Shown here in pieces: positions 5,680-23,119 of a DNA stretch of 64,000 bases. Positions within the stretch are counted from its first letter, which is position 1. Each line of letters opens with the position of its first letter. This DNA is from Chlorokybus atmophyticus (taxonomy: Eukaryota; Plantae; Mesostigma and Chlorokybus algae). The notes beneath the pieces were generated by a model. The model worked only from the letters and a program-made list of their open reading frames with translations, searched no databases and had not been told where the DNA came from. The stretch is taken from contig RHPI01000777.1 in assembly GCA_009103225.1 (NCBI GenBank), forward strand, positions 62,001 to 126,000, read 5' to 3'. The position numbers and the translations under genes were made by a program.

Positions 5680-6830
5680 AAGAGTCATGGGCTCAGCTGG
5701 AGGACCCGACAAGCAAGATCATCCCAAGGTTATATAGGCTACCCAACTATGCTACCCCGTTAGCAGACTTCACTCCGAATTCCTCCTTTCTACCAGAAGA
5801 ACAAGTGGGCGAACCCGACCCACTCGCTGCTGCAAGCATCTGTCGTTCTCTCTATCGTGACCACAATTCAAAAAGCGAAGAAGACATGGTGGCCACCAAT
5901 GGCACTCGCAGCAGCAGCGGAGACAGTAGCAGCGGCAGGAAGCTCATCTTCATTGGTGCTGCTGGCTCCATCTCATTAAAGGGGTTGCTCAGTCGCTTCA
6001 ACTCCATCATCCTAACAGTGAAAATACGCGCAAAAGGCAAATGGAACGACCTACAGCAGAACCTTATTGCCGCTAATTACTTGGATGACGTGGCAATGGG
6101 CGTGTGGCACGAGATTGCCTCTGCACGCGACATGCTTCAAGATGAAATCCTTCTCCGCTATGGTTCCTCTTCGGGTCCCACCACAAGAAGTCGATTAAGA
6201 ACACCATTGACCCTACCAGCTACGGCACTGTGTACAAGGTTGTACAGGTGCGCGCCACAGGCACTCTATCTCTTTGGGCTCCATTTTTAATATTTGAAAT
6301 GACCATGTGCTAAATTGCTTTCCATGTCATCTCCCGTACGTTGAAGGCCTCGGCAAACCTCGCCCGGGGGTTTAATGACCCGAGCAATGCACCGGATGCG
6401 CCTCAGACCGTCGCCCTCTGGTGGGATGTGACACTTGCTGGGGCACCTACCACAACATCACTACGAGTACTGCAGCCCCTATGCTTCTTACTCTCCCCTT
6501 TGCAACTTTGCATGCTGCCCTGCAGCATTGATAACTTTTCACACTTGTGCACTTCACCGTACACACTCCCATTGCGAGACACATCCCGCAGTCGAGCCTT
6601 TCTTGCACGACAATGGTTTTGAAGTTTAAGAAGAAGCTGCTTAGGCAAGCAGAGATGGTTGTTAATTCGCGTCCACGCAATATGTTACTTAATCTGAACC
6701 ACACTATCTGGCAAGCATTGCTAAGGTAATGTCATTGCACAATCTGTACGCCTACAGCGGTTTTGTTCAGCATGCCAGCCTCCATTCAACAGAGGCTATC
6801 GACCATTGGGCAACTGCTTGAAGCGTATGA
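5680..6830 (+). other. Unassigned spliced coding-like region, probably a degenerate gene or TE gene
   Basis: Long open frame (ORF 5475-6290) with protein-like composition, plausible introns (donors near 6248 and 6725) and a frame change near 6160. No family recognised. Confidence 0.3.
6156..6394 (+). repeat. 239-bp direct repeat, copy 1 (copy 2 at 17067-17305)
   Basis: By eye the sequence cgctatggttcc...gcaatgcaccg is identical at both loci. Confidence 0.92.
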
Positions 6831-11200: not shown

Positions 11201-12323
11201 GGCCAGATCACGGGGCTGTCTCATCTCCATCGCTCTCTGTGGAAGATGGAATGGATGCGGACTTGGATGTCCTTGATGCCACAGCCCATGGCGCAGACAT
11301 TTTGCATGGTGCCTGGTTGCAAACTCCGGACATGGACCATGATGTGGGCACCAGCGAACTCAACGGCTTTCCTCCAAGCACTGCACTGCCAAACCTGCAC
11401 AATGTTGTTTCCTCCGCGCCTTCACGCTCTTTGGGCATTGACATCCCTGCAGCTGAGAGCAGGCCAGCCACAGGAAGAGGTTCGCCAGAAGGGCGAATGC
11501 ATGGTGGATCATTGGTCGCCATGGCGCTGGGAAGGTGAGCTACTGCTGAGGGTGCTGCATTGCGTTGAATTGAGCTTCGTCTCTGAGTGGCAGTTTTTGA
11601 AATGAGCATACTCAAGTTGTCTACGACAGCTACTGGATGTTTTCTGATGTGATTCAATCGTGCAATGTGTTGAAGGTTTGAATCCACTTCAGCGAAATCG
11701 CCAGCCAAATCAGGAACGGTGCCGCTGGCGCCATTTGAAGGACTGTCTGCGCTGGCTGAGCATCATGCAGATGCGCCAAACTGGATGAGCCCAGACAAGC
11801 CAGCAGGTTGGGCTCAGCACGCCATGCAGGATACACTGTCAGTGTCATTGCCACCACTTAGAACAGAGGCCAGTATCTCGCACAGTCCACCCAGCCGGGC
11901 GTCACCCTCCCCCAAAGAAACGCTTACCGTCAAAGCCACGCTCAACGATGACACTGTGCGCTTCCGTCTTCATCCTGATTCAGGATACGAGGGGCTGGTG
12001 CAAGAGGTAGGGATTGGGATGGTACATGAAGTGTGCATCTGCTGTACATTTGCTCCAAGGTCTCACTTGTGCACTGCTGGTGATCAGGTGGCCTCATCGT
12101 TCCAAATTGAGCCGACTGCGTTCACTCTGAAGTACATGGATGATGATGAGGAGTGGATGATGCTTGCCAACAGTCGGGTAGGCAGTGTGGCTGTCCTGCT
12201 TGTAGGATGCATGGTGATTTCCAATTGCAGATCAGCTTACGTGCTATTCTCCAGGATTTTGCGGAATGCATCATGTTGGCGAATGCGAAGAATGTTATCA
12301 AGCTTCATGTGCGTTTGCGGTGA
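8253..12323 (+). CDS. NLP: NIN-like protein (NLP): GAF-like nitrate-response region, RWP-RK DNA-binding domain, C-terminal PB1
   Basis: Spliced exons give [56 protein letters not shown] and VFE|FFLP. RWP-RK: [14 protein letters not shown]|[32 protein letters not shown]|VSRS. PB1: [15 protein letters not shown]...[15 protein letters not shown]...VIKLHV, TGA at 12321-12323. The start ATG 8253 is inferred. Confidence 0.93.
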
Positions 12324-12386
12324 CTGCCACTTTGGCTATACAAGGCGGACAACGCCGTGTTAACATTGCCGTTCTTGTGTACAGGT

Positions 12387-13141: not shown

Positions 13142-13470
13142 TTAGCTTTGATGTATGCCATCTTCTTGATTGAAAAGGACAAAAGTGTCTAGTGTAGCAT
13201 TAGCGTGAGCATCAGCAACAACTACACGCCGACCATGCAGCGCGAAGTCAATGTGCGGGCTTTTAATGTCATCGCCGCCAACAATTGCCTCAGGTTGCAT
13301 GAACTCCGAGCCACGAGGAACAAGGCTCCGGTCATGCAACTCGCAATGTCCGTTAGTTCTATATAGCCAATGTTCTTTAAAGGTTATTGTATTCAGCAGC
13401 ATCCAAGCGCCGTCATCGCGTGAATCAGTTACTTGATTCATGAAGCAGTAGCAACACATAGCTACAGAAT
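13142..13470 (-). pseudogene. C-terminal fragment of a paralogue of the neighbouring F-box gene
   Basis: FMNQVTDSRDDGAWMLLNTITFKEHWL...DRSLVP...HGRRVVVAD...LDTFVL aligns with FMGQVTDAGCHDYTWLLLNTATFKERWL...DRSLVP...HGRHVVLAD...LDTYDL of the 14743-16422 gene. The upstream part is lost at the poly-C/N junction. Confidence 0.7.
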
Positions 13471-13491
13471 GTCCTGACCCACCTCCCAAAG

Positions 13492-13571
<80 letters not shown>

Positions 13572-13572
13572 N
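13492..13572. repeat. 80-nt poly-C run ending in an N, likely an assembly junction
   Basis: Directly visible. Confidence 0.9.
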
Positions 13573-13720
13573 GTACAGTGGCAGCGGTGGTGTCGACGTT
13601 GGGCTCGTGCATGCGCTGGCCGAGCATGCGACTGCTTATGTGCTCGTATGGGCAGGCACGCGGGACCGAACGAACAGCAGGCCCAACCTGCTGAGGATCG
13701 TGCTTGGGGCGCCGGCATGA
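13573..13720 (+). pseudogene. larC: Last exon of a second LarC-like (nickel-pincer Ni-insertase N-terminal domain) gene copy
   Basis: Reads RWPSMRLLMCSYG-[1-nt shift at tatgggcaggc]-AGTRDRTNSRPNLLRIVLGAPA-TGA. This matches the LarC motif WPxM..xGYGAGxRD...RPNxLRxxxG and is paralogous to 20124-20301. Confidence 0.7.
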
Positions 13721-13998
13721 TCTTGTTGTTGTGGTGGTTGGGTACACTTGACTGTTACTGCAAACGCACATATTGCCTGGTACTGTGCTGGCCTTACGAT
13801 GGTTGTACCAAGTATCCTTATGGTGCATGAGGGAACAGGTGCTTAATGGGGCGCAACCAACGCTGCAAACACTCAGGCATGCGACAAGCATTGGTTTGAA
13901 TCGAAACAAGGTATGTGACGACAAGAATCGATAAGCCACTATGGAGTATGGGCACAAAGTAAGGGCAGGGAAGGCAGGCGGGCAACAAGTCTGCCCGC

Positions 13999-14373
<375 letters not shown>

Positions 14374-14742
14374 GCGCGCGCGTNCCGAGCCCACGAGCCC
14401 GCTGCACTGGCATAGGTCATGACCAGGTGCCAGGGTAGGTGAGGTGGCTGTGGTTTCACTGTGGTGGTGTGTGGTTTGATGCACTTACATCCGTTTTATA
14501 TCACAACGAGAGGCACGCACAACCCTGACTATGGTAATATAGCTCACGATATGTTAGTGGTACTGCCTTTTGCTGGAACTGTCGCAGTTTGGCTAGTGAG
14601 CGCATGCACAACAATACCAGGAATACAATACAATGCTTGGTGAGTGCGGGACACTTGGATATCAAAAGCCTATGTTCCATCCCTTGTTATGATACACCCG
14701 CATTTCTTCTACCACCACCACTACTTCTTGTGTACGCTAGCT

Positions 14743-16422
14743 TCAGTCTACGCCCTCGTTTTGACTCAGGAGGTCATAAGTGTCCAACACAGTGATTGTC
14801 CGGACATCCGCAAGCACTACATGTCGACCATGAATTGTGAAGCCAATGTTTGGATTCGTATCGAAGCCGTAGTCAGAGCAGCTCTGACTTTGGCGGCGGC
14901 GGCGGCCGTGGCAGCTTGGAGGGACAAGGCTCCGGTCAAGCAACTGGTAAGCGCCGTCGACCATGCATAGCCAACGTTCCTTGAAGGTAGCTGTATTCAG
15001 CAGCAACCAAGTGTAGTCGTGACAACCTGCGTCCGTTACTTGACCCATAAACCAGTCGCAGGTGGTGGCGCCAGCAACGAAACGCATGTACCCCTCTGGT
15101 GCATCAAGATATGTCTCACTACCGGTCTTGCTATAGCACACCAACGAATCTCTGAACATCAACACGACACATGAAGGCATGTCCGCCCTCTCAACCACGT
15201 TATCAAGTCCATTCTCGCGCAATGCTCTGCTCGTCGCTGCATGAAGGTCGCGTGGCAATGTCGTTATGTCACCGCTGATGGTGGCCACCGACAATAGCTC
15301 CGGCTGCCAGTGGTCATGACGGAACACTGTCGCATGAAGCAACAGCTTTGTCTCCAACCCACCATCTGACGTTGTCACAAACCCGCAGTTGAAGTCAAAG
15401 CCTTTCATTGCATGAGTCCCTAATGTTGAAAAGTCGGGCACTGACTGAACACGTGCACTCACGGTGCGCGGACGGCATCGTGAGTCCCGATCAACCACGC
15501 CGTCTTCACTCAGCACGACCACACGACTGCTGTCAAAGTAGACAGGCATAGCCGTCCGACGGTTGTCCTCATCGCGATGACAATCGGGTACAATGCCGCA
15601 CATGATGCAAGTGCGCTGATTGATATCCCAATGCCAGAAGTGCCCGGAGTTCAAGTACACTGTGAGGAGGTGATTGTCCCATACCATTGCCGTACGACAA
15701 ACACCCCGAGGAGGCGTCTCAAGGAGGCGAAAGCTCTCGCACTGATCAGCGATAGGGTCCCAGAAATGCAGCAAATACATGCACACCATGTCACCCCTCA
15801 GAATACAATAGAGAGTGGCTACGACTGTGTCGCAAAGCACTACTTTCGCTGCTTTGTGCAGGTCGGACGGTCGCGGTAATTCGTTTGATAGGAAACAACG
15901 TGGGTGCAGGTCATGTTGGCGCTGCGCCACACGCCCGGATGACGGCCAACTCGCCACGCGCCTCTGTAGATCAATGAAGCGCCTGTGCCAGCTGCGTCCA
16001 TCAGCATTGCTGTTGCAATGCGAGCGTGCCATGCCGCAGCCCCTTGAAAACTTTAGCTGATGCCACACTTTCCATAAAGAGTCGTCATGCGCGGCAGTCT
16101 TCCAATTGCTGTGAGTTTCAAACAGTGTCAGCAGTTGAGTGCGGCTACAGCACACACGCATGCACACGCACACACATGCAGATGCGCGCACGCGCGCGCG
16201 CGAACCATGTCAGCAGTGTACACAACAATCTTTTGCGTACCGGCATACCGCAGCCGCCTTTGCAGCCTCTTGCGCTCCCACTTGTCTAAAGATGTGATGC
16301 AAGCAGTCCACTGGCAATGTGGTCCAGTCAGGTGTTTGGTCATCGTTGCATGCAACCTGTGCATCGGACAAAAAGCTCAAGGGCAGCTGTTGGCAACTGC
16401 AATGCCAAAACCCACCTAGCAT
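14743..16422 (-). CDS. F-box protein with an unrecognised C-terminal domain
   Basis: The F-box motif DWTTLPVDCLHHIFRQVGAQEAAKAAAVCR (exon 16356-16241) splices via a GT-AG intron (16240-16109) to NWKTAAHDDSLWKVW. The frame then stays open to TGA at 14743-14745. The start is uncertain. Confidence 0.8.
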
Positions 16423-17066: not shown

Positions 17067-17305
17067 CGCTATGGTTCCTCTTCGGGTCCCACCACAAGAA
17101 GTCGATTAAGAACACCATTGACCCTACCAGCTACGGCACTGTGTACAAGGTTGTACAGGTGCGCGCCACAGGCACTCTATCTCTTTGGGCTCCATTTTTA
17201 ATATTTGAAATGACCATGTGCTAAATTGCTTTCCATGTCATCTCCCGTACGTTGAAGGCCTCGGCAAACCTCGCCCGGGGGTTTAATGACCCGAGCAATG
17301 CACCG
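17067..17305 (+). repeat. 239-bp direct repeat, copy 2; ends exactly at an N
   Basis: Identical to 6156-6394; the next base, 17306, is n. Confidence 0.92.
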
Positions 17306-18594
17306 NAACATGCAGCATTGTGAGTGTGGCCATACCTTGTTGGGCAGCTGGTTATGCTCAAGCTTCACCGCCGCCGCCATCCGTTCTCCCGAGGCGGCCA
17401 GGCTACCGTAGGCACGCCGCCTAAGCGAGCTAAGCCCTAAGAAACGCTTCGACTGCCCACTCTTCCAGCAGCAGCAGGCTGCGCTGTGCAGCTACGCCTC
17501 CTGCTACACAGCAACAACAGGCAGAGCTCTTCTCTCTCAACAGCCATGAGCTGTGGTCGCCAATGCCATCCCGCCCGCCACCAGCAAACACGCCACGACG
17601 AAACTCGCAAATGAGGAATGAGTCAGTTCATCACACGGGTGTTGCCAACAAAGGCTGCTCACTGGAATGGGCGAGGCGCTCTCTCGTCCCAAACAACCGA
17701 TGCCCGGCTGTGGTCTTGGTGTCCGCTGCCGCCGTGGCGCAGCACGCGCACACAAGCCCCAGCGACTCACTGACGAACAACCCCAGGCAGGGGTTGGTGC
17801 ATGCCCGTGCTCATGGGCTCACTGGGATAACGCTCTTACGCTCTTTCATCCGTTCCCTGTGCGGTAGCTCCCTGTGTGCGTACTTGTCTCATAAGCCGTA
17901 CGCATACTATGCTGCTGCTGCTACTAGCCTAGCCTTCTAGTGCACGCCCCTGCAACGGAGGGCAGGGCATGCATGCAGTGTGAAGTGGTGCATGGTGATG
18001 ATGACGGCTGCTGCAACAGCTCAACTTCTGGAGTCTTGGTCGGCCAAGTCAACGCTGGTAAGCAAAGGAGGTATGAGAAATGCAATTACACTTGTCACAC
18101 ACGCATGCACACAAACACAAACACGCACACATACAGACTCACACAGAAGCACCCGCGCACACACACGCATGTGCACCCACAGCACAGTACTTGATACCAG
18201 ACCAAACAGCCACCTCCATTTGCGCAAAGCCATTTCTTGCCTCACAGTGTGTAATGCAACAAATCACTACCACGCAGAGACACTGACTCTTTTGCATTGC
18301 CTGTGGTCTTCCCAAAGCAGCAGCGGCGACAACAAACGCTTGCAAGGACATACCACACAGCGGCCCCCAAGCACCTCGTCCGCGACCGTGACCACAAGGA
18401 GCACACCGGCACCCACATTCATAACCACGACACATTGAGCATGAGCACCAAGGCGAAAACGGCCAGAGCAAGGTTGCACAAAGCTCATGTACTTAGACTG
18501 GTGTATTAGGGTTGTGACAACCAAGCTAGTACCAACTCTCCAGCACTTCGCTGATTGGTACTTGTCCTCTATCAAACGCTGACTACCCACTCCC

Positions 18595-18740
18595 ATGTTG
18601 ACTCCCCGCTCCCACTCCCCCCCTCTTGATCGCGGTGCGGGGTCGTTCCTGTGGCTCTTCCTGGACGCATACGCGGCGGGGGCTCGCGGGGGACATGGTC
18701 GTCGCCGCCGCGCTGGTGGATCTGGGGCTGCCGGTTGAAA

Positions 18741-18834
<94 letters not shown>

Positions 18835-20301
18835 GGGGCGATGGTGCGTGCGTGTTCGGTGCGCGCGTGCGTTCGTTAATTCGTGCGTGCTTGTGCGTGT
18901 GTGTGTCGCAAGTGTTGATGCATGTGTTTGCAATGGCAGGTATTAAACGAGGGGCTGTGCAAGCTGGGGGACTGGAAGGTTGAGTGCGAGTTTCAAGGCG
19001 TTACACGCTCGGCCATGTATGCATCAAGGCAGTTGTAAGTAACATGACACATGTATGCACTTGCACGTGCCGGCACGCATGCGTGAAAGCAGCTAACAAG
19101 AACGGCCTCAGACACACGTGCGTGCGGAAACACACACAATGGCACATGCGCAGACACATGCAGGGGGGAGGAGGAACACGCCTGCATGCGCCCGCACGCA
19201 CACACGTAGGGCATCCGTAGGCACACATGCACACATCTGCAAACAATCACACCCGCACACGCGTGCATACTTGCACACACGTGCACATGCGAACATGCAC
19301 AGATGTCCATTCCTTATGTGCAGGTTCGTTGTGAGCGGAGACGGAAGCACAGCCGGCACGCGATTATGCGCAGAGATCAGGCGGTTGATATCCGCAGCAG
19401 CTGTTAAGGATTTCGGTCTGACGGAGGGGCGGCCAGGGCTGGCATTGGATGCGTTTCGACGGCGTGCGGTGGCCGAAACCAGCGTGCACGGGGTCGGAAA
19501 AATGGACGATGTGCACTTTTACGAAGTAAGTGAAGGGTGTCAGGGTGAATGACACGCGCGCGCACGAACACACATGCGCTCAGTTACACCTGCGCCTCAA
19601 CATGATATGGTGCAGTGTTGTCAAGTGCGCTGTTTCTCAGCAGTGGTTCACGCGACACAATTGCAGCAGTTGATGTGGCAGCATTGTATGAATTCAGCCA
19701 TAGACGGCATTGTGGACGTGGTGGCGGCACCCATTGCGCTGGACTACCTCGGGGCGGGAAAAGTGGCGGTGGTGCTCCCCGTCGGCCGCGGCATCCTCTG
19801 CGGCACCGCACATGGCCCGTTCACACAACCCCTCGCATGCCGCAGTGAGTGTGCTGTCACAAGTTGGCACCCACGCATGACACAATAAAACAAGGACACA
19901 TAGATACACACACACATGTGGACGCACATGCACACGCACAAGCACGCGCACGCTCATGCGGACACGTACATGCACAAGCACGCATATAGATCACACAAAG
20001 ACGCGTTCACACGCATGCGCGCATATACGCCCCCCCACCCACCCACCCACCCCACCACCACCACACACACACACACACACACCAACACCATTGTCTCTCC
20101 TCACCCCTCCCAACCCGCCTCAGATCACTGTGTGCTGCGGGCGCGTGTCTGGTGACTGCAGCGGTGTCTATGTTGGGCTTGTGCACGCGCTGGCCGAGCA
20201 TGCGGCTGCTTGGCTGCTTGTACGGGGGAGCATGCGGTATACCTGTTAAAGGAGGGCGAACTGGCGAACAGGCCGATTGCAGCGTGAGCGGCTGCTGCTA
20301 A
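18595..20301 (+). pseudogene. larC: Intron-containing LarC-like gene (nickel-pincer nucleotide cofactor Ni-insertase/DUF111, N-terminal domain), frameshifted
   Basis: Exon 1: MLTPRSHSPPLDRGAGSFLWLFLDAYAAG-[extra G in the run 18678-18682]-LAGDMVVAAALVDLGLPVE. Exon 18940-19028: VLNEGLCKLGDWKVECEFQGVTRSAMYASR. Exon 19324-19525: FVV...AEIRRLISAA...ALDAFRRRAVAETSVHGVGKMDDVHFYE. About 19697-19844: AIDGIVDVVAAPIALDYLG...LPVGRG..CGTAHG. From 20124: LVT...RWPSMRLLGCLYG. Motif order matches bacterial LarC (D..SG.xGDM..ALxDLG; AEAxVHG...VHFHE; DSIxDIV; LPxGxG...AHG; LVT; WPxM..GYG). Confidence 0.8.
18741..18833. repeat. 93-nt poly-G run that hides the first larC splice donor
   Basis: Directly visible. 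Confidence 0.9.
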
Positions 20302-22174: not shown

Positions 22175-22308
22175 GCTCTTGGAGATCGCTTTACCTAGCC
22201 CTTTACACGTTCAACATGGTCATAAAATAGTGGTTGCCCAGCACTGCTGACTGAGTCAGCGCATTGCGCCATGCAGTGTGCCATGCAATGCAGCTGCGCT
22301 AGTACTGG

Positions 22309-22950
22309 CTATTGCTGCTGCTCGATGCTACCTGGGCGAATGTGCACGATGACCGTATCATTGTCGTCCGGGTCCGTTGCCGCCTGGAGCAGCTCCTCCG
22401 GATACGCGCTCAAGCCCTTCGGCCCCTGCAATTGGGTCAGAAGCTCTTGGTGGTTCGACCATACTGTAACAACCGTTGCACTCCAAGGCAGAGCATCGCC
22501 GGCGGCGCCGCCGCGCAGCGCACTGCGCGCTACGCTCCTCGCCTCCTCCGGGGTGAGCCTGCGAGTGCTGCTTAGGCCCATGCAGACATAGGGTGGTGCG
22601 TCTGACGTGACCACAGGCGCCGGAGCCAAGCGATGGGTGGCGGAAATATGACGACAGTCAACTGCCGAGGTAGCGGAGGACTGGGGGCGGGGTGCACTGC
22701 GACCGTCCCAGACCCTGAGCCCTGAGGGTGGTCGCTGGCTACCTGCGCAGTAAATGCAGGTGCGCATTATCACACAGTCATACACTACAAACCTTTGATA
22801 ATGCCACGCTGTGCAAGACACTTTAAGCAGACGGACTTCCGACTTGATCAATACAATGCTTTCAACTGCGAGACCTGCTGCTCTGCTGCTTGCTTCTGGC
22901 GCTGCTGCTTTGAGGTGCGACGGCGAACCAGCTCTAGCTCGGCTGGGTTC
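22309..22950 (-). pseudogene. Unassigned spliced gene, apparently frameshifted (coiled-coil exon plus 3' exon)
   Basis: Coiled-coil frame ELELVRRRTSKQQRQKQAAEQQVSQLKALY-TGA shifts to LIKSEVRLLK. A long 3' exon ends ...LLTQLQGPKGL...DPDDNDTVIVHIRPGSIEQQQ. Confidence 0.3.
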
Positions 22951-23119
22951 GGCTCCCGCATCTACACGACATACCACACAACAGATTGCATGAGTTGTCG
23001 TAATTGTTAACACATACTATGCGTACGATGCATACTCGCCCCTTGTAGGTTAGCGAACAAACAATGGCGTTGTCAGCATCATCGCAGATTGACATCCTCC
23101 AATGCATGATGCTCGTGCT

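Follow-up and report, generated by a model that had tools for sequence, protein, structure and literature searches.

A probable decayed LarC1-type gene copy in Chlorokybus atmophyticus and its relation to LarC1-only genes on eukaryotic contigs

Within the analyzed window, i.e., the whole stretch of 64 kb of Chlorokybus atmophyticus DNA, the locus at 18595–20301 carries a LarC-like motif series that is real and far beyond chance. The locus is most probably a decayed paralogue of the LarC1-only gene family found on eukaryotic contigs, a family that has received little study.

Homology and exon arrangement of the locus

The Pfam search revealed three pieces matching the profile PF01969 (Ni_insertion/LarC) in collinear order, all of them on the plus strand, namely 18626–18742 (profile positions 5–26; E 0.06, 12.9 bits), 19325–19528 (positions 70–119; E 1.3e-3, 18.4 bits), and 19697–19846 (positions 121–165; E 4.7e-4, 19.8 bits), each single-piece match lying below the gathering score of 22.1 bits. 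Two of these pieces, 19325–19528 and 19697–19846, were also matched by TIGR00299 (NCBIfam). The stitched translation, for which one G of the G-run was skipped and an X was placed at the exon 4/5 joint, achieved 115.7 bits (E 3.7e-34; profile positions 6–179) against a LarC1 profile based on 119 relatives, with the window copy left out, the top score among 200 shuffled sequences being 3.1 bits. The preliminary description, which had read the motif series at this locus and had named a Pfam/HMMER search of the stitched protein as its check, is confirmed by the collinear pieces and by the value obtained for the stitched protein.

The pieces 18940–19035 (exon 2) and 20125–20298 (last exon) were without a Pfam match on their own, and the last exon alone did not match the LarC1 profile either. 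Among the open stretches of the 64-kb window, only three exons of the locus scored against this profile, together with a weak match at 13478–13717. A PDB search with the exon pieces related 19697–19846 only weakly to LarC (12bi; E 0.78), and this match was used for residue numbering, not as proof. The Rfam scan of the 64-kb window yielded zero matches.

RNA data were represented by one small run (X1, Logan contigs), being 90–97% alike to the window. Since none of the RNA contigs was at least 99% alike to exons 1–3, they may stem from a paralogous gene, or individual contigs could be graph chimeras. RNA contig 1 covered 17500–17896 and 17951–18056, skipped 18057–18319 (GT..AG), and continued over 18320–18688, indicating that the transcript starts well upstream of 18595, the position where the gene had formerly been thought to begin. 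On the plus strand, an upstream exon (17951–18056) and an upstream intron (18057–18319) thus precede the exon at 18320–18739, which comprises a His-rich tract and the start of LarC1 (PPLDRGAG...LFLDAYAAG / LAGDM...DLGLPVE). At 17897–17950, the RNA contig has 153 different letters compared to 54 in the window, located around a GCT repeat, this segment being length-variable between copies or strains.

The ATG at 17992 opens an 85-codon frame (MVMMTAAAT...), which runs into the His-rich tract (HLVRDRDHKEHTGTHIHNHD, approximately 18370–18440, frame 0) and meets a stop at 18507. The frame of this upstream His-rich tract is thereby terminated, and no open frame links it to the LarC1 part. Regarding an extra intron linking the two frames, no AG was found in 18583–18625, and the RNA contig is continuous there.

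Exon 1 closes with ...GLPVE at 18739, followed by an A and, directly behind it, by 93 G's (18741–18833, plus strand). In the RNA alignment, the segment 18730–18846 was masked as a repeat. Exon 2 (18940–19034, plus strand; VLNEGLCKLGDWKVECEFQGVTRSAMYASRQ-) is bordered by an AG acceptor and a GTAAG donor, and corresponds in the alignment to the family loop between DLGVP and RFVV. It is joined in frame to exon 3, the joint reading ASRQL/FVV instead of the ASRFVV proposed previously. Exon 3 (19324–19525, plus strand; FVVSGDG...AVAETSVHG...DVHFYE) covers PF01969 positions 70–119 and ends with HFYE followed by GTAAGT; AEIRRLI and AVAETSVHG...HFYE, which had been listed as separate pieces, both lie within it. 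The exon-4-like piece (19682–19844, plus strand; AIDGIVDVV...LPVGRGILCGTAHGPFTQPLACR), recognized from PF01969 positions 121–165 and the 12bi alignment, is followed by GTGAGT. Joining the donor at 19525 to the canonical acceptor at 19697 breaks the frame, and to connect exons 3 and 4 in frame, either the acceptor 19681 or the donor 19529 combined with the acceptor 19697 is required. No RNA supports this piece.

The exon-5-like piece (20124–20301, plus strand) was delineated by frame reading. From the acceptor 20123, a stop is reached after 9 codons, the only in-frame acceptor being 20161. This last piece reads GACLVTAAVS...RWPSM...YGGACG in one frame and NRPIAA-stop in another, with a stop at 20299–20301, and its homology to the end of the family sequence is recognizable only when frames are combined. 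Its LVT, listed in the preliminary description, aligns with the GAC(L/I)VAA stretch, the ELVTPTG block itself being deleted. The use of alternative acceptors would allow exons 2 through 5 to be connected in frame.

LarC1-only relatives and phylogenetic placement

Bacterial LarC is a two-part protein, in which the CTP-dependent activation of the pyridinium-bisthiocarboxylate mononucleotide is the task of LarC2, and LarC1, featuring a His cluster and an acidic pocket, is the site of nickel insertion. In Lactiplantibacillus plantarum, larC1 and larC2 are adjacent frames that are fused in translation by a programmed ribosomal frameshift; separate coding of the two parts thus has a precedent. In contrast to this adjacent arrangement, a six-frame search of the 64 kb around the window copy with a LarC2 profile derived from 107 LarCs of bacteria detected no LarC2 (best E 0.95). 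In a recent hexamer model of LarC, the intermediate crosses a cleft on its way from LarC2 to LarC1 (PMC13510736).

Using the 68 residues of exon 3 as the query, a phmmer search of the whole library returned four matches, one of which, P0003, was 57% identical to exon 3. The other three were repeat proteins and were rejected as LarC relatives. P0003, encoded at locus L001, resides on metagenomic contigs of a compact eukaryote (picoeukaryote), its neighbours including ribosomal L7Ae, zf-CCCH, FtsJ, a VTT domain, and SecA. The L001 gene starts with a leader and His-rich tracts, followed by LarC1 up to VHFHE, a 145-base intron, and the rest of LarC1, and it ends after RANLVRLVAGG. It covers PF01969 positions 1–119 and 119–238 of 375 and then stops, LarC2 being absent. 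The intron after HFHE is located at the same codon boundary in L001 and in intron 3 of the window copy. The L001 intron behind VHFHE (6627–6769) begins with GCGAGC and ends with CAG, and is therefore an apparent GC-AG intron.

Searching with the P0003 domain recovered 119 further LarCs. Eight relatives (P0003/L001, P0009, P0010, and P0012–P0016) comprised LarC1 alone: fewer than 90 residues follow the RPN block, and His-rich tails are present at the N- or C-terminus. On the contigs examined for P0009, P0010, and P0013, the neighbouring genes are eukaryotic ones split by introns (Aquarius, cytochrome haem lyase, uDENN, and DnaJ). Profile searches of the loci L001–L003, L009, and L010 likewise detected no LarC2. 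A search for eukaryotic LarC2-only proteins with residues 285–428 of P0011 was discarded, the best 120 matches looking like bacterial fragments or split calls, many of them labelled Deltaproteobacteria or Polyangiaceae.

Judged by these sequences, the family consists of the LarC1 (nickel-site) domain only, usually accompanied by a leader and His-rich tails, and is devoid of the CTP-binding LarC2. The previous assignment of the locus as a LarC gene therefore stands with regard to the LarC family, the introns, and the eukaryotic setting, but not with regard to a whole LarC. Similarly, the His-rich loop reported as missing is indeed absent; however, its absence is typical of the clade and of its nearest bacterial relatives, and is thus no sign of decay.

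The window copy resembles bacterial LarC (PF01969/TIGR00299; Moorella thermoacetica, PDB 12bi) in the order of the LarC1 motifs, those in common being G-x-x-GDM, R71, A-x-AE-x-x-VHG, VHFHE, A-x-D-x-x-x-D, and HG(P/K)LP. It differs from the bacterial enzyme by being without LarC2, by the replacement of His118 by Tyr, by the loss of the E187 and N238 blocks, and by a broken frame, and its gene is intron-split, with an upstream leader or His-rich tract. With the LarC1-only proteins, which belong to the same clade, it has the entry motif P-x-L-x-RGAG-x-G-x-LF-x-DA(Y) in common, as well as the intron after HFHE in the case of L001. These proteins end with the LarC1 domain and possess His-rich tails, not an internal His loop.

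The preliminary description had also called for a LarC tree, which was calculated for the LarC1 domain with 116 rows (IQ-TREE quick, LG+C20). The window copy was placed within the LarC1-only clade from eukaryotic contigs, with SH-aLRT values of 96 for the 9-row clade and 98 for a 4-row subclade with P0009, P0010, and P0013, values to be read with caution given its long branch. Its end branch amounts to 1.95 changes per column compared to a median of 0.16, i.e., 12 times as much. Sister to the LarC1-only clade are P0011 and P0029, two full-length LarCs of bacteria, and next comes a group that includes a "Proteobacteria bacterium" MAG. A bacterial origin of the clade would fit this tree, in which it is nested among bacterial LarC. 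Gene transfer from bacteria, followed by loss or splitting-off of LarC2, would give a LarC1-only branch.

Lesions, RNA joints, and assembly quality

Exon 1 contains a net +1 frame shift within the G-runs at 18678–18692, as had been suspected. RNA contig 1 matches 18648–18688 without gap or mismatch, its 15 gap letters and 9 mismatches all being located elsewhere, which indicates that the G5 run at 18678–18682 is present in RNA. In intron 1, the GT donor is gone, with the G93 tract in its place. The change from HFHE to HFYE, which had also been recognized before, lies at 19514–19525 (Tyr codon TAC, 19520–19522) and removes the His118 equivalent. The exon-4-like piece lost the invariant VG before it as well as the PPPA motif, and one extra Ala is present in the DM..AALLDLG helix of the window copy. 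The degenerate 3' end was equally borne out: besides the ELVTPTG deletion, the last exon shows a destroyed DRPNLLRLVLG block and further frame breaks. An uninterrupted reading frame is absent, considering the +1 shift, the stops between leader and domain, the frame changes in the last exon, and the donorless intron 1.

Residues were numbered according to M. thermoacetica via the PDB 12bi alignment, an offset of 18 fitting H160 and H116/H118. In the His cluster of LarC1, the equivalents of H108, H116, and H160 are kept and H118 is Tyr, and six of the seven acidic-pocket positions (D15, R71, E104, E119, D124, D128, and E187) are kept, D15 only after frame correction, E187 being lost. Exon 3 retains the equivalents of R71, E104, H108, H116, and E119, and the exon-4-like piece those of D124, D128, and H160. 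E187 disappeared with the ELVTPTG block, and N238 as well as the C-terminal RPN block are lost. The roles of the LarC1 nickel-site residues have been studied, and the H118A, E187A, and N238A variants showed LarC activity under 10–20%, that of H118A being below 10% (PMC13510736). Since the alanine variants cut activity, the loss of all three equivalents in the window copy was counted as evidence of decay.

Across ten relatives, 57 invariant columns were defined. The interrupted window copy keeps 36 of them (63%), in contrast to the LarC1-only relatives, which are open frames with 93–100% (57 of 57–61 each in the seven other eukaryotic members). LarC1 profile scores were 318 bits for the intact P0009 and 123+91 bits for the L001 gene, both being inside the profile training set, and 116 bits for the window copy, which is outside of it. 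The earlier suspicion of a dead copy is most likely right in view of the invariant columns, the 12-fold branch, the replacement of H118 by Tyr, and the frame breaks. As deduced from its lesions, the copy at 18320–20301 can apparently no longer make a LarC1 domain. The frame break in exon 1, together with the leader/His-rich frame stopping before the domain and the donorless first intron, would prevent its formation, and an essential nickel-site His, the E187-bearing block, and the RPN block would be missing in addition.

RNA contig 2 begins exactly at 19324, fits to 19525, and then continues with an exact match of its loose end to 22294–22323 (chance expectation 0), the start of a downstream exon on the plus strand. 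The joint 19525/22294, with GT at 19526 and AG at 22292–22293, represents a canonical 2.8-kb intron skipping "exons" 4 and 5, with a contig depth of 64, and the frame after it reads CTG CGC TAG (Leu-Arg-stop). For the exon-4-like piece, zero RNA depth was obtained in X1; contigs show presence and not absence, so exons 4 and 5 may still be used in RNA. The comparison of splice junctions with RNA, which had been recommended from the outset, thus brought to light two GT..AG joints, 18056/18320 and 19525/22294. The region 22294–23100 (plus strand), RNA-joined to exon 3, overlaps a 234-codon open frame at 22309–23013 (minus strand) without a Pfam match.

The exon-3 part of RNA contig 2 (94% alike) showed seven differences and three single-base gaps in comparison to the window, all in 19425–19493. 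C19457T turns CGA into TGA (in-frame stop), the E104-equivalent codon is changed to Asp, and zero of the scorable exon-3 changes are silent. The expressed exon-3 variant is broken too. RNA contigs 1 and 2 are regarded as coming from a paralogue or as graph mixtures of paralogues, and at least one near-identical copy would be transcribed. The only RNA-supported joint from exon 3 would skip the rest of the gene and end in a stop.

A transcript of exons 1–3 and the exon at 22294 could also be imagined to give a short working product, either a truncated nickel-binding peptide or a pseudogene-derived regulatory RNA, as the canonical joint with its depth of 64 and the His-rich 85-codon frame opening at 17992 might suggest. 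We consider this very improbable, because the reading frame with the His-rich tract terminates at 18507, ahead of a domain whose own frame is shifted, and because a stop codon interrupts the expressed variant. Moreover, the LarC1 fold would be cut after HFHE without D124, D128, H160, and E187, and no sign of conservation of such a product was noticed.

A second copy, comprising the last exon only, was identified at 13575–13700 (plus strand) after a C80+N gap. It is 79% identical to 20152–20237, matches the LarC1 profile weakly at positions 219–242, and reads WPSMRLLMCSYG (keeping SYG), followed by a -1 shift and AGTRDRTNSRPNLLRIVLG-stop. It retains RPNLLRIVLG-stop, compared to only the NRPIAA-stop remnant, in another frame, of the focal copy. 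Its -1 shift was also found in RNA, and the loose end of the short RNA contig 3 (over 20165–20211) is identical to the second copy at 13637–13666, not to the focal copy. When the picoeukaryote protein was compared to the window with tblastn, only the focal locus and the fragment at 13575–13700 were found, and no further full copy. Several copying events of the LarC1 family seem to have taken place within some tens of kb of the Chlorokybus genome.

The second LarC1 fragment is adjoined by a 72%-alike fragment (13142–13460, minus strand) of a 482-codon open frame at 14743–16191 (minus strand), which has no Pfam match and F-box/WD40 proteins as language-model neighbours (score 0.94, a lead only); a unit of LarC1 and the 482-codon gene may therefore have been duplicated. 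An open frame at 11719–12363 (plus strand) matched the PB1 domain (E 2.2e-5, just above the gathering score). Approximately 430 bases at about 13950–14384 represent a (GA)n/(CT)n microsatellite, leading to long false open frames on both strands.

The LarC family being mainly prokaryotic, bacterial contamination or a chimeric scaffold segment has to be considered as well. It is extremely improbable, since the coding pieces are split by GT/AG introns, two of them RNA-supported, the closest relatives reside on eukaryotic contigs, and the flanks contain eukaryote-type genes (the F-box-like lead and the PB1 domain). On these grounds, the original view that the segment is not a contaminant is upheld.

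The G93 run (18741–18833) and a C80 run (13492–13572, ending at an N) are both located at borders of LarC1 copies; they look like gap fillers (e.g., no-signal G calls), or may be a real insertion. Furthermore, the 239 bases at 6156–6394 recur with 100% identity and in the same orientation at 17067–17305, where they end at the N at 17306, and this exact duplicate is probably a scaffolding or gap-closing artefact. In light of the G93 tract, the C80+N gap, single N's, and the duplicate beside an N, some of the frame breaks could be assembly errors.

Taken further, these nearby artefacts might mean that a working LarC1 gene of the alga has been obscured by frame shifts and a G tract introduced during assembly; the copy retains the majority of the acidic-pocket residues as well as three of four conserved His, and in-frame alternative splice sites exist. 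We regard such a working gene as very unlikely, because the losses affect 21 of the 57 invariant columns, among them the His>Tyr exchange, the deleted ELVTPTG block, and the RPN block, and indel errors cannot account for substitutions. Moreover, the end branch exceeds the median 12-fold, the G5 run at 18678–18682 reappears in the RNA contig, and the RNA skips exons 4 and 5. The lesions are presumably real and not assembly errors. Since substitutions and block deletions cannot be homopolymer errors, and since the G5 run and the shift of the second copy were found in RNA, the copy at 18595–20301 is with good confidence a true pseudogene, dead or dying.

Implications for the LarC1-only family

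Some unicellular eukaryotes possess genes for NPN biosynthesis, and the LarA homologues of eukaryotes are gluconate 2-epimerases (PMC11770544). In the literature searched, DUF111 is mentioned in passing for one moss and one diatom, and nothing specific on LarC or lactate racemase in green algae was found. The hint at NPN or nickel biochemistry that the locus had been thought to give is not supported by the locus alone, as the broken front half of an enzyme does not show nickel-pincer chemistry. Taken alone, the locus, as a probable pseudogene, is of minor importance. It serves as a pointer to the LarC1-only clade, a coherent group from eukaryotic contigs that is characterized by His-rich tails and the lack of LarC2, and in which the intron position recurs in a picoeukaryote.

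An intact paralogue elsewhere in the genome presumably does the work, and the role of the LarC1-only family is likewise inferred. The decayed copy might mark a recently amplified LarC1-only family in an early-branching green alga, in which case an entire clade of eukaryotic algae might make the nickel-pincer cofactor with a split LarC, i.e., a His-tailed LarC1 and a separate LarC2, probably in the plastid; this proposal is tentative, and we consider it possible rather than probable. Of greater interest is the question, at the level of the family, whether algae have a split LarC. If an intact paralogue, LarC2, LarB, LarE, and a LarA homologue were all present in the alga, the split LarC would become testable, with its halves as separate proteins. 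If true, it would represent a eukaryotic version of a pathway that is regarded as essentially prokaryotic.
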